Origin: Dimorphilus gyrociliatus
Taxonomy: Eukaryota > Animalia > Annelida
Direction of reading: 5' to 3'
Assembly: GCA_904063045.1 (NCBI GenBank)
Contig: CAJFCJ010000006.1
Location: 1,121,771-1,185,770, forward strand
Length of the DNA: 64,000 bases
Shown here: piece after piece, positions 2,404 through 7,500 of the stretch
Layout: each line of letters starts with the position of its first letter
Numbering within the stretch: position 1 is the stretch's first letter
Notes under the pieces: model-generated
Database searches by the model: none
What the model saw: the letters and a program-made list of their open reading frames with translations, nothing else
What the model was told of the DNA's origin: nothing
Translations under genes and position numbers: made by a program

Positions 2404-2862
2404 ATGGGCAAGCGATATTAGAGGAATTTTATTAATCGATACAAGGATATACAAGCCAAGATATAGAATGGCACATGTTGGTGATGTTAGTTGGTTGACG
2501 GTGGCGTTCGTAGCGGAATAATTAAAGTTTTTTTTAAAATAGTATAGACCAAATGCTTTGAAAGTAATATAACAGACTTTTTTAAGCATTCAAAGTGATA
2601 AAGATTTTAAAGATCAATTTTGATTTCAATTGAGTATCGTTAAAAGAATAAAGTAACTAATAATAATACATGCTTTATACCGGTATATATGAAAAAAATA
2701 TATAGCATTGATTAATTAACATTATTACACTCTCTTCTAAGAATGAATCAATCCTCTTTAACCTTTTCTTTTATGTTTAAAAAACATATATTAACATAAT
2801 GATTTTTTTTTAAAAAAAAGTGAAGAAATGACAAGATATTTTAATATTAAAAACAAAGGATT

Positions 2863-4389
2863 ATGACAATGATAAATATTATAGAAATTATTATTTTTAT
2901 TCAAATTTCTTCTATATATTCTTTAAAAATATTTTGGAATAACAATAATGTCGATGAAAAAGTCGTTGAGCAAGGTTGCTCGTTCAATAATATAAGCAAT
3001 TTAACTGCCAAAGTTAATCTTATTCGGGATAATGAAACAATAACTCTTGAAACTATAAGACTTTACGCTTATTATGAAACGGAAGTTGACATTTTTTATG
3101 ATAAATTTGCAGAACGTCTAAAAAGTTCTAAAAGTGGAATTGATTTTTGTGTTCTTTGCTTGAACGATAATAAACATATAATAGAGAAGAAATGCCTATC
3201 ATCAAGACAACAACTTAATGACACATTATTCTTTGTGTATCGAGTGTTTAAAGCAATTCCAACAAAATTTAACTCTTTTAAATCTATGGAAAACTTACGC
3301 TCTGGTTTTGTCAATAGTAAAAAATCTAATAAATTAACAGCTATTGGCATAGCGGGTCTAGTTTTGACTGTTGTTATGATATTATTCGTTATGCTTTGTG
3401 GGAAATTCTTTTCGAGGAACATTCGAAATTATGCTAAGGACGACATAGAAAATGTAAAGTATTACATACATGCATACATAAACAACCATATGCATATATA
3501 TAAATGGATATTGAAATAACCTCCATTAAGTTAATGATTCATAGATAAAGTATTTTATCCAATATTTAGGATTCAAAGAACCTTTCTGAAGATAACTGGT
3601 ACCGGAAAGCAATAAAAGCTGCTGGTGGTACACTTCCTCCTAATGCTAGAAGTCTGAGACCAAAGCAGATCATTGGTCGCATTAACTCATAAAATATTTG
3701 TATTATTCTATTCTAAATGTTTTTGTACAGGTATTTATAAATCTTTTAGAAAAAATGATGCAGACGGAAATGGAACAATATCTTCAGAAGAGTTAAAAGC
3801 AGCTATGAAAACTATGAATAGAAATTTTAATACTTCTCAAATTCAAAAAATAATGGCTGACATGGATACTGACAGTTAGAATTCCAGGTTTCTTTTCTCT
3901 TTATTTTTTTTTCCTTTTTCTCTTTAGAAAGCGGAGCTATTGACTTTTTCGAGTATTTAAATGTTGCTGCGGAGATGGTAGCCGATGATATTGCCTACTT
4001 AAAAGCTTTCAATACTATTGATTTGGACGGTAGTGGGTAAATATCTTAGTAATAATTATTAATGAATTAATCAACTATGATTAAATTTTTTAAAATTTGC
4101 TTTCAGAGAGATTTCTGCTGAAGAAATGGCGGTTGCAATGAAGCAAATGAATATAAACGTTTCTCCCCAATATATTCATGAAATAATCAAAGATATGGGT
4201 ACCAAAAAGAAGGATGTAATTAATTTTGAAGGTAGTAGGAGACATTAATATAGATAAATATTTTTTTTACTTTATCTCCTTCCTTCTACAGAATTCAAAA
4301 AAATAATTGCTTGGAAAGCTAATCAATCAAATTCCGTTAATGGCGATTTATCCTCTGTGAGCGGTGAATCAACAATACTTACTAAATGA
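2863..4389 (+). CDS. Predicted type I membrane protein with cytoplasmic calmodulin-like 4-EF-hand domain (~390 aa, 6 exons)
   Basis: Exons 2863-3453, 3570-3675, 3731-3874, 3928-4036, 4107-4231, 4292-4389; all GT-AG and phase-compatible (1173 nt). Signal-like N-terminus, TM helix LTAIGIAGLVLTVVMILFVMLC, EF loops DADGNGTISSEE, DTDKSGAIDFFE, DLDGSGEISAEE and degenerate GTKKKDVINFEE. The EF-hand part is certain; its join to exon 1 is inferred. Confidence 0.72.
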
Positions 4390-4545: not shown

Positions 4546-7500
4546 TCACTTTCCAAATTGAGTGACCATTAGATTTGGAGCGCCGTAGCATACCATATTA
4601 AAATTTGATCTCTCTCCTGAAATCTGTTCAGAGGTTAGTGTTGCCATACTTAAACCGTGTTTCATTCCGCTGCTTTCGTTTTCTGTTTCTTCTGCTTCCT
4701 CTTCTGCGGTTTCATCGGGCTTCCTCTTATGAGGCATTGATAAAAATCGGGTAGCTTCACCAGTTGTATAGGCTTTAGGTAGGAAATCTTTCATAAAATC
4801 ATGTATGCGCTGTGCATTTTCTTCTAGAGAACAATGCCATTGGTTTGATAGAACGCATCTAACACCAGTCAAACCTAACAAAATGGACGTCTCGACAGGT
4901 TTTTCCAGGTTAAGAACTTCTTGTCTGTAAACGCGGTAAGCAATTACATATTAAATTCTCTTAAACTATATATATATTAGGCATACGTTTTAAGGACGTC
5001 AGTTTTGGCTCTCCTTGAAAAGCTCTTGCCTGTTTGCATCAAGTCGAGAAGCATCACAAACTGGCACTCTGGCAAGTTAAGACTTGCTATATTTGAAGGC
5101 GATAATTGACATGCAAATCTTTCCATTCCGTAATAAATGAAGCCAGAGCCCTCATTCAAATAAATTTCGTACTCTCCTACACTTGGAGAATGTTCACTAC
5201 CTGCAACTCCAAGCCAACGAGGTGTGAATTGTTGAGAATGTTTTTCAACCATTTCGTTGAAAATTTCAATAGGTTTACAAGTATCTGTATCAGGCGCATC
5301 AGAATTCGGATCGACAACAACTGTGGGAAAGAATGTTTTAAACATTAATAACATTTAAGTGTCTACATTAATTATTTCTCTTATATCATTACATCTAACG
5401 GCATGAGTATCCACTGGTAGACAGGTAGATGGTACTGGTCTCTCAAGGGGTACGATTTTACTCTGTTTCTTCGCAGCATCACGCAATCCAGGTATTCGAC
5501 TAGGCGGTTTATTTTTTTCTTTTTCTTTCAAGGCTTTTTCGGCGGCTTCGTCTAGAGGTTCAATGTACATTTTATGATGTAACATTTGAAGACTAACATC
5601 TCTTGAGACTGATGTTATATAATCTGCTTGAAGACATCTCAAAGCCTCCAAAGGCCATTTAAGGAGTTCAATATCCGCTAGTATTGCGATGCACTCATTT
5701 TCAGCTGATTGAGCATCCTTACTCATTGTGCTTCCGCTTGTTGGGCGTCTATTTTTAAAAAGGAAATTTGATTTGAAGGGGTCATTTAACTCTATTCAGA
5801 CTTACTTTTCTTTTAATTTCTTTGAGATATCACTCAAATATGTCTCTGTACACTCTATTAAATTCAAATATTCATGTCTCAATTTCTCTTCATCTTCATC
5901 TTCAAATTTACTTTCATTCTAGATATAAATACACTTTATACATGAAGATCTTAAGATAAAAGGATAGGGTAAATATAATTTCTACAATATCATATATTAC
6001 TAACCGGAATAGGAGATCCTGAATCAAGAGTAGAGAGCATCTTTTCCCTTTGAGCCTGTCTTGTTTTCTTATATTGACACTTTAAAAGGATCTATTAGGA
6101 AAGTAAAAGTATTTTTTTGTGATCTTCGTGTTGAAAAATGTTTAAGTTTTATTGTTTTTACCATCATTGCATCGTGTTTCCACCATTTCCATCTCTCTTG
6201 TAATTCCTCTAATTCTTGCCTTGAAGTTTTTACTCTCAAGACTTGAGCTTTTGATGTAAACTGGCCTGCTCCCCTTCTATTTGCTGCGGCTGCATTTAAA
6301 TTTTTCGATTTGTCCATTATGGAACAATACAGATAATTCTTATCGGGAGAGAATTGAAGAACGACACAAGTAATATTCGGAGGTAAATCTTTTATTAGAT
6401 CCATATGGTGAGTTGATACGCGTAATCTTTTCCAAGCCTTTAAATGAAAAAGAAGAGGAGTAAACTATAGAATACATTAAAATTTCTAATATTAATAATT
6501 TTACAATGAACTTTTCGTCCAATTGTTGCATAATTGATCTATAGCTCGGACCCATTTTCGAATTGAATATCAAGTCTTTTTCTAACATATCATCTCTTTG
6601 TTTTAGAAGAGCTGCCAGCTGAGATTGAGTTGGATCGACAAGTGCCCTTTTTAATAAATTTTCGCAGTAGAGTGACGCTTCACAACTCTGACGTAAAGAT
6701 AGATATTGACTGCAAAGGCCAGGATCAAATTGACCTAGGCATTCAACTAATTCAATTGATGCTTCGCTAGTCGTTCTCTATTAATACATTAGAAAAATAT
6801 TAAATATAGAAAGTACTAAAGAATTATATTATTATTTACAAGTAAACCATGTTTCAAGGATAATACTATTGATTGTTGAAGAATTTCAGTTGCTTGAGCG
6901 AGTAATTTTTGAGAACTATGCTTTTCACTCTATACATTATAAAAGTATTTAGAATTTCAAATGTCTGTTTAGAAATATCTCTATACCTTTAATTTTTTCA
7001 ATCTTGCAGAGAATTTAATAAATTCATCTGTATCTTCATTGACGTATTCATTTTCAGCGCTTTCATCAATATGTAAACCTAGTTTCTCCCTCTCTATCCA
7101 ATCAGCATTCCAAAGTTGTTTAGGATCGGGAGAAGCATGTTCTGACATAAGTCTGACGCATCTTCCCACTAAAAATAAACATTTAGCTCTCCATTCTATT
7201 AAATTTGGTGACTCTTGCTGCGATATGGTGAGAGAATGAGCAAAACTTAGGCTAGTTAGTGCCTGATCGCAAGCAGTCTTTATAAGAGATTCCCATTGTT
7301 GCTCTCTACCTTCATAGTGTGGAGTGTCTCTTGTTAAATTCTCAACTTCTCTCTCAACAGATAATTTTCTTTCCCATTGAATTCTTTGATTTCTGGCTCG
7401 TTCGACATATATTTCGAATATTTTAATTAATACCCTAGAATATTTAACATTGCATTTTATCGTAATTCTCTGGTAAGGTAAATTAATATGTTGCAGCTGC

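Follow-up and report, generated by a model that had tools for sequence, protein, structure and literature searches.

The question raised by this locus is whether a membrane protein and a calmodulin-like domain that lie side by side in the genome of the annelid Dimorphilus gyrociliatus belong to two genes or to one. The stretch analysed, here called the window, comprises 64,000 nucleotides (nt) of contig CAJFCJ010000006.1 (GenBank assembly GCA_904063045.1, positions 1,121,771 to 1,185,770 of the forward strand) and is AT-rich, with 28-39% G+C. In it, an open reading frame (ORF) at 2863-3519 on the + strand encodes 218 amino acids (aa) with a hydrophobic N-terminus and is followed by exons of calmodulin type. 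The original prediction, made from the letters of the window alone, held that a phase-0 donor at 3453 joins this ORF in frame to an exon at 3570 and gives one protein of 390 aa. A spliced transcript contig and the arithmetic of the exons bear this out. Our results support a single gene of six exons, in which a transmembrane protein is spliced in frame to a calmodulin-like domain with four EF hands. The gene is laid out as follows.

2863-3453, + strand: exon 1, from the start codon to a phase-0 donor; encodes the predicted signal peptide, the ectodomain, the transmembrane helix and the juxtamembrane segment.
3454-3569, + strand: intron 1, 116 nt, GT..AG; holds the stop codon TAA of the unspliced ORF (3517-3519) and is skipped in the transcript contig.
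3570-3675, + strand: exon 2, the putatively cytoplasmic linker DSKNLSEDNWYRKAIKAAGGTLPPNARSLRPKQII(G), running into helix A of EF-hand 1; spliced on both sides in the contig.
3731-3874, + strand: exon 3, EF-hand 1 (DADGNGTISSEE) and the beginning of the EF-hand 2 loop; in the transcript contig.
3928-4036, + strand: exon 4, which completes EF-hand 2 (DTDKSGAIDFFE) and continues through the central helix into the first part of the EF-hand 3 loop.
4107-4231, + strand: exon 5, in which EF-hand 3 (DLDGSGEISAEE) is completed and EF-hand 4 follows, with the degenerate loop GTKKKDVINFEE.
4292-4389, + strand: exon 6, the exiting helix of EF-hand 4, a Ser/Asn-rich C-terminal tail of 26 residues and the stop TGA at 4387-4389.

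The six exons sum to 391 codons (390 aa and TGA), and all introns are of the GT..AG type, with phases 0,1,1,2,1. The joint that makes one protein of the two halves is formed by the donor AAT|GTAAAG at 3453/3454, in phase 0, and the acceptor ...TTTAG|GAT at 3569/3570. Only one public run (X1) contains the stretch; its contigs are spliced, therefore the run is RNA-derived. One of them reads 3338-3453, 3570-3674, 3730-3874, 3928-4035, 4106-4229 and 4290 to beyond 4600 without mismatch, with at least 105 letters on either side of each joint and no foreign letters inserted. GT..AG joints are listed for four of the introns, and the fifth joint (3874/3928), whose intron contains a T-run at 3888-3926, is evident from the adjoining contig coordinates 366/367. 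A second X1 contig of 217 nt, covering 3141-3357 at a depth of 7.3, is colinear with exon 1. The splice and the exon structure are thereby confirmed by direct observation. The opposite outcome, in which exon 1 would end at its own stop and the EF-hand exons would begin from a separate first exon, was looked for and is contradicted by the contig.

The identity of the EF-hand domain was likewise confirmed. Searches were run exon by exon, and the publicly annotated protein DgyrCDS4438, which joins the same exons from Met142 onwards, stood in for the spliced part. In DgyrCDS4438, Pfam finds two stretches of EF-hand_7 (2.6e-24) and three of EF-hand_1 (4.6e-22), and exon 3 alone gives EF-hand_1 at 5.3e-9. 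Compared with solved structures, the domain is colinear with calmodulin residues 4-146 (E ~1e-18). The end of exon 2 matches calmodulin residues 4-10, where LRPKQIIGIYKSF aligns with LTEEQIAEFKEAF of helix A, so that the alignment of the linker to calmodulin helix A and EF-hand 1, as first proposed, is recovered in the structure database. EF-hands 1, 2 and 3 have canonical 12-residue loops (ligands at positions 1, 3 and 5; Glu at 12) and are predicted to be competent for Ca2+; the loop of EF-hand 4 fails at positions 1, 3 and 5, and the same degenerate loop is present in the related species described below. This agrees with the earlier view of three competent loops and a degenerate fourth, and EF-hand 4 appears to be dead but conserved.

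With calmodulin the domain shares, besides its colinearity, two pairs of EF hands, nine Met and the absence of Cys. It differs by a deletion of three residues in the central helix, by the dead EF-hand 4 and by a moderate identity, the best calmodulins in the PDB scoring 66-71 bits over ~140 residues; the protein also adds the C-terminal tail and ~225 N-terminal residues that include the ectodomain and the transmembrane helix. Judged by its sequence, it is a calmodulin-like protein and not a calmodulin. Within the genome its closest paralogues reach only ~30% identity, and a recent duplication of another gene is therefore not its origin. As a side observation, exon 3 (144 nt) has phase-1 boundaries that align with calmodulin E11 and G59. 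It presumably corresponds to the third exon of calmodulin genes in vertebrates, and such a match would suggest that a true calmodulin gene was the ancestor. We also observed several calmodulin-like ORFs of 147-162 aa in the genome, apparently intronless and ~30% identical to the EF domain:

C6:1868584-1869015, C30:51229-51660, C7:2120433-2120840 and C19:869577-869954, in the D. gyrociliatus genome: apparently intronless calmodulin-like ORFs.

The same gene is found in a second species. When exon 1 was compared exhaustively by HMMER with 1.84 billion representative proteins, a single relative came up, a protein of 204 aa with 41% identity over residues 10-196; no further relative was detectable among those proteins. 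This relative is encoded on unspliced genomic contigs of five runs (SRR23372216, SRR23372228, SRR23372229, SRR23372231 and SRR31984834; Logan assemblies), and at its loci (L002:6001-7579 and L003:57-1635) the linker and EF-hand exons lie just downstream of the exon 1 part. DNA alignment and a check of the boundaries gave the same six exons, all introns GT..AG, the same phases (0,1,1,2,1) and again 391 codons; the donor of exon 1 is AGT|GTAAGA, in the same phase. The flanking genes are the same on both sides, with 55-91% identity, and therefore the loci are orthologous. Neighbouring genes are 80-90% identical between the two species, against ~40% for the ectodomain.

Conservation along the protein, observed directly in this second species, ranges from 37-42% identity in the ectodomain to 68% in the transmembrane helix and juxtamembrane segment, 75% in exon 2, 85% in exon 3, 94% in exon 4, 80% in exon 5 and 65% in exon 6. 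The proportions of nonsynonymous (pN) and synonymous (pS) differences confirm that this is accompanied by constraint: residues 21-141 of the ectodomain have a pN of 0.38 versus a pS of 0.77, the transmembrane and juxtamembrane part has a pN of 0.18, and the EF exons have a pN of 0.09 versus a pS of 0.64, the synonymous sites being saturated (pS 0.6-0.8). These values support purifying selection on both halves of the protein, with an ectodomain that is fast-evolving yet constrained. All four Cys of the ectodomain and the motif IYS|LK.FW are invariant, and Met142 is absent from the relative. Exon 6 (4292-4386 versus L002:7482-7576) has the lowest pS, 0.38 versus ~0.7 in the other exons, together with the lowest protein identity among the EF exons. 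This could reflect constraint at the nucleotide level close to the 3' end, where the convergent neighbour overlaps, or could be noise over 31 codons.

What the EF-hand domain is attached to follows from the features of exon 1:

2863-2922, + strand: N-terminal hydrophobic segment, a likely cleaved signal peptide (residues 1-20; Kyte-Doolittle 1.7-1.9 over residues 1-25).
2923-3333, + strand: ectodomain (residues 21-157), with four conserved Cys and four sequons, predicted to be beta-rich.
3334-3402, + strand: transmembrane helix LTAIGIAGLVLTVVMILFVMLCG (residues 158-180), an uncharged run of 23 residues with Kyte-Doolittle up to 2.89; in the transcript contig.
3403-3453, + strand: basic juxtamembrane segment KFFSRNIRNYAKDDIEN, with which exon 1 closes at the donor AAT|GTAAAG in phase 0.

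The predicted cleavage site has small residues at -3 and -1 (I, S), and the surrounding IYS|LK.FW is common to both species; the N-terminus of the relative, MKFFSFFLNVLLVKLPFIYS, is a textbook signal peptide with n, h and c regions. The four Cys of the ectodomain (39, 96, 99 and 111) and its several N-x-S/T sites (N43, N46, N57 and N119) had been remarked upon in the original prediction and were reproduced here, as were its coordinates, reading frames and EF loops; an additional Cys, C179, lies inside the transmembrane helix. There is one internal hydrophobic helix followed by a basic flank (KFFSRNIRNYAK in D. gyrociliatus, KCFSRNVRKYVK in the relative), as is expected of a type I membrane protein, and this arrangement is conserved in the relative.

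The ectodomain itself resembles little else. The Pfam scan of exon 1 gave sub-threshold noise only. AlphaFold2 on the two-sequence alignment of exon 1 gave a beta-rich model of 8-9 strands at low confidence (predicted local distance difference test, pLDDT, 54). For the fold of exon 1, Foldseek found no match in the PDB at E <= 0.001, a shape search of the ESM Atlas stayed at template-modelling (TM) scores <= 0.37, and VIA-align wide returned just generic beta-sandwiches and single helices, with Z <= 5.1. The best value in the feature search of the ESM Atlas, 0.81, fell on viral and vertebrate type I membrane glycoproteins and is below the meaningful level, so that it amounts to no more than a lead. 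No paralogue of exon 1 was found in the D. gyrociliatus genome. A match of exon 1 to a protein of 920 aa was judged spurious, this being a bacterial-type tandem-repeat protein in which an E of 2.6e-7 is spread over seven repeats at 25% identity.

Taking these features together, we consider it likely that the gene encodes a 390-aa type I membrane protein whose calmodulin-like domain would act in the cytosol as a membrane-fixed Ca2+ sensor. From the N-terminus, the order would be a signal peptide, an ectodomain of ~137 aa that is probably glycosylated, disulfide-bonded and beta-rich, the transmembrane helix, the basic juxtamembrane segment, a linker of ~30 residues, the calmodulin-like domain and the tail. 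The type I topology is suggested because there is a putative signal peptide, the Cys and sequons lie on the N-terminal side of the helix, the basic flank comes after it and the EF domain is free of Cys. The calmodulin-like domain would then be held in the cytosol, ~45 residues from the membrane. Loading of EF-hands 1-3 with Ca2+ may open hydrophobic pockets, which would bind a partner at the same membrane, and the ectodomain or luminal domain may serve in sorting, in retention or in the binding of a partner outside. The linker, 75% identical to that of the relative, and the juxtamembrane segment are conserved beyond what a passive tether would need, and therefore both may be binding sites themselves.

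Several points weigh against this reading. The public annotation begins at Met142: DgyrCDS4438 (249 aa) follows the same splice chain, but starts at the ATG at 3286-3288 and lacks the signal peptide as well as all but a small part of the ectodomain; it is 100% identical to exon 1 residues 142-197 and was the sole match to exon 1 in a word-index protein search. No X1 contig lies on 2522-3140, so that the first 278 nt of the coding sequence are without RNA cover, and the main contig starts at 3338 with the cover upstream of it in a separate contig, which means that no single contig spans the full-length mRNA. The N-terminus of the D. gyrociliatus protein lacks a basic n-region, carries a Glu in its hydrophobic core and is weaker as a signal peptide than that of the relative. 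The 15 residues before the transmembrane helix have a net charge of +3 and the 15 after it of +2, and the positive-inside rule alone is therefore insufficient for the orientation. Neither Pfam nor three structure searches gave the ectodomain a recognisable family or fold. Finally, the cytoplasmic orientation of the EF hands is predicted from sequence rules only.

The annotation from Met142 and the RNA cover, which is of low depth from 3141 and reaches the main contig at 3338, might be taken to mean that the main product is the short protein of 249 aa. The transcript would then begin within exon 1 and be translated from Met142, with the transmembrane helix as an N-terminal signal anchor, and the 141 codons ahead of Met142 would seldom or never be used; AtCML4 and AtCML5 show that a signal anchor joined to a calmodulin domain is a workable layout (PMC4915527). 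We think it unlikely. Ahead of Met142 the frame stays open for 141 codons, for which the chance is ~2e-6 from the local composition (the other five frames have 6-27 stops), and these codons are constrained in comparison with the relative. The relative has no Met142, which means that what is conserved cannot be the short form. In a transcript from ~3141, moreover, two ATGs out of frame (3192 and 3218) would precede the one at 3286, and gaps in coverage between contigs prove nothing, as the contig-alignment tool itself notes. Since the upstream frame is open and constrained, the same locus is present in the relative and Met142 is missing there, the full protein is the conserved product, and DgyrCDS4438 is probably cut short at its N-terminus, with 141 residues missing, although D. 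gyrociliatus may also make a shorter isoform. The truncated public model hides the architecture of signal peptide and ectodomain from database searches. That the locus holds two genes, a small transmembrane protein ending at 3519 and a calmodulin-like gene with a first exon of its own, is scarcely credible. Unspliced, the ORF at 2863-3519 does end at a stop of its own, but the contig joins 3453 straight to 3570, and on this ground the two-gene model was rejected. Exon 2 directly follows an in-frame TAG (3567-3569), as predicted, and the accompanying claim that it contains no ATG holds for the reading frame, although not as it was worded, for a single ATG is present at 3643 in frame +1. The donor, the acceptor and the phase are conserved in the relative. 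Attachment of exon 2 by trans-splicing was also rejected, trans-splicing and operons being reported absent in D. gyrociliatus (PMC7854359).

If the protein is made at full length, its EF hands could still face the lumen or the outside: the N-terminus would not be a working signal peptide, the transmembrane helix would be a type II signal anchor, and the protein would be a Ca2+ buffer or sensor bound to the membrane on its luminal side, similar to STIM or CREC proteins. The slightly more positive N-flank of the helix in D. gyrociliatus, the N-terminal segment without basic n-region and a weak Pfam match of DgyrCDS4438 to EF-hand_STIM1 (17.9 bits versus a cut-off of 32.2) speak for this arrangement. 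Nevertheless, it is quite improbable, as the conserved Cys and the sequons are N-terminal to the helix and the EF domain is free of Cys; in the relative, the signal peptide is canonical and the flanks favour the opposite orientation (C-flank +3 versus N-flank +1). The domain is also of calmodulin type throughout, and the match to STIM is under the threshold of the family, with no SAM match in the Pfam scan of DgyrCDS4438. STIM1 and STIM2 are single-pass membrane proteins with a signal peptide and EF hands, as is predicted for the worm protein, but their EF hands and SAM domain are N-terminal to the transmembrane helix and luminal, whereas the worm EF domain comes after it. Another possibility shares the topology of a membrane-fixed cytosolic sensor and goes further: the protein may be a type I receptor specific to the lineage (dinophilid annelids) that carries calmodulin as its own cytoplasmic tail and reads events at the ectodomain together with local Ca2+. 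Ligand binding or clustering at the fast-evolving ectodomain would be combined with local Ca2+. By one possible route, the tethered lobes would bind in a Ca2+-dependent manner to the conserved basic stretches of the juxtamembrane part and the linker (KFFSRNIRNYAK, WYRKAIKAAGG), in their own or a neighbouring copy, and the protein would thereby form a complete switch of its own at the membrane. We regard this proposal as doubtful. The description of the protein as receptor-like in the original prediction is unsupported, there being no recognisable ligand-binding domain, and no class of animal receptors with a calmodulin tail has been described, as far as our literature and database searches reached.

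How new the favoured architecture, a sensor fixed to the membrane by a helix ahead of its EF hands, would be depends on the comparison with known proteins. It had been stated at the outset that calmodulin-like proteins are normally soluble. Exceptions exist in AtCML4/5 of plants (PMC4915527) and in CaBP7/8 (PMC3062558), and in this sense the principle has precedents, although nothing else was found to be arranged in exactly this way. AtCML4 and AtCML5 have an N-terminal signal anchor, and the calmodulin domain of AtCML5 has been shown to face the cytosol (PMC4915527). Like the worm protein, they hold a four-EF-hand calmodulin-like domain at the membrane by a single helix N-terminal to the domain. 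They differ in having only the short signal anchor, with neither a cleaved signal peptide nor an ectodomain, and in being specific to flowering plants. The conserved worm protein has a putative signal peptide and an ectodomain of 137 aa, and only the short DgyrCDS4438 form would resemble the plant layout. Beyond the EF-hand superfamily the plant and worm proteins are not detectably related, and anchoring to the membrane probably arose independently in the two.

Among animal proteins, the calneurons CaBP7/8 are integral membrane, calmodulin-related sensors with cytosolic EF hands and a C-terminal tail anchor, and they act locally via PI4KIIIbeta at the Golgi (PMC3062558, PMC2706317, PMC3488092). 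The calneuron family is of late, vertebrate origin (PMC6372560). The likeness to the worm protein lies in the integration of a calmodulin-related sensor into an animal membrane, with some of the EF hands dead. The difference lies in the anchor, which in calneurons is a C-terminal tail helix, whereas the sole transmembrane helix of the worm protein is N-terminal to the EF domain and its C-terminal tail (WKANQSNSVNGDLSSVSGESTILTK) is polar. Calneurons have inactive EF3 and EF4; in the worm protein only EF4 is inactive. Word searches with DgyrCDS4438, whole and with residues 57-249, brought up EF-hand proteins that are all soluble, among them centrins, plant CMLs, fragments of CDPKs and two longer matches without a transmembrane helix; these searches depend on shared words, and the absence of the same architecture elsewhere is accordingly weak evidence. 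The layout is found so far in D. gyrociliatus and one close relative only, and it is unusual for animals.

Sensors of calmodulin type are usually soluble and take their specificity from their targets, and fixing one to the membrane would be a different way to localise the decoding of Ca2+. The solution of a signal peptide, an ectodomain and a transmembrane helix would have arisen apart from both plant CML4/5 and the vertebrate calneurons. In this gene, which belongs to a very compact genome, a young, fast-evolving membrane module is joined to a signalling domain that is old and conserved. The reach of the finding is moderate, as it concerns one small lineage and constitutes a curiosity rather than the answer to an open question.

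Upstream of the gene, an X1 contig with a CT..AC joint defines a neighbour on the minus strand with exons at 2147-2322 and from 2397 to ~2521; its orthologue in the relative (L002) has Pfam matches to 2OG-Fe(II) oxygenase and to the Ofd1 type. Since the transcript of this neighbour ends at ~2521, the interval 2522-2862 is the only room for a promoter. The end of the neighbour is ~340 nt from the ATG, and a short divergent promoter is probably common to both genes. On the other side, the transcript contig of the gene measures 8167 nt and continues for ~7.2 kb beyond 4600 into a convergent neighbour on the minus strand (ORFs at 4546-5726 and further). This run-on reflects either overlapping 3' untranslated regions of the two genes or a merge made by the assembler.

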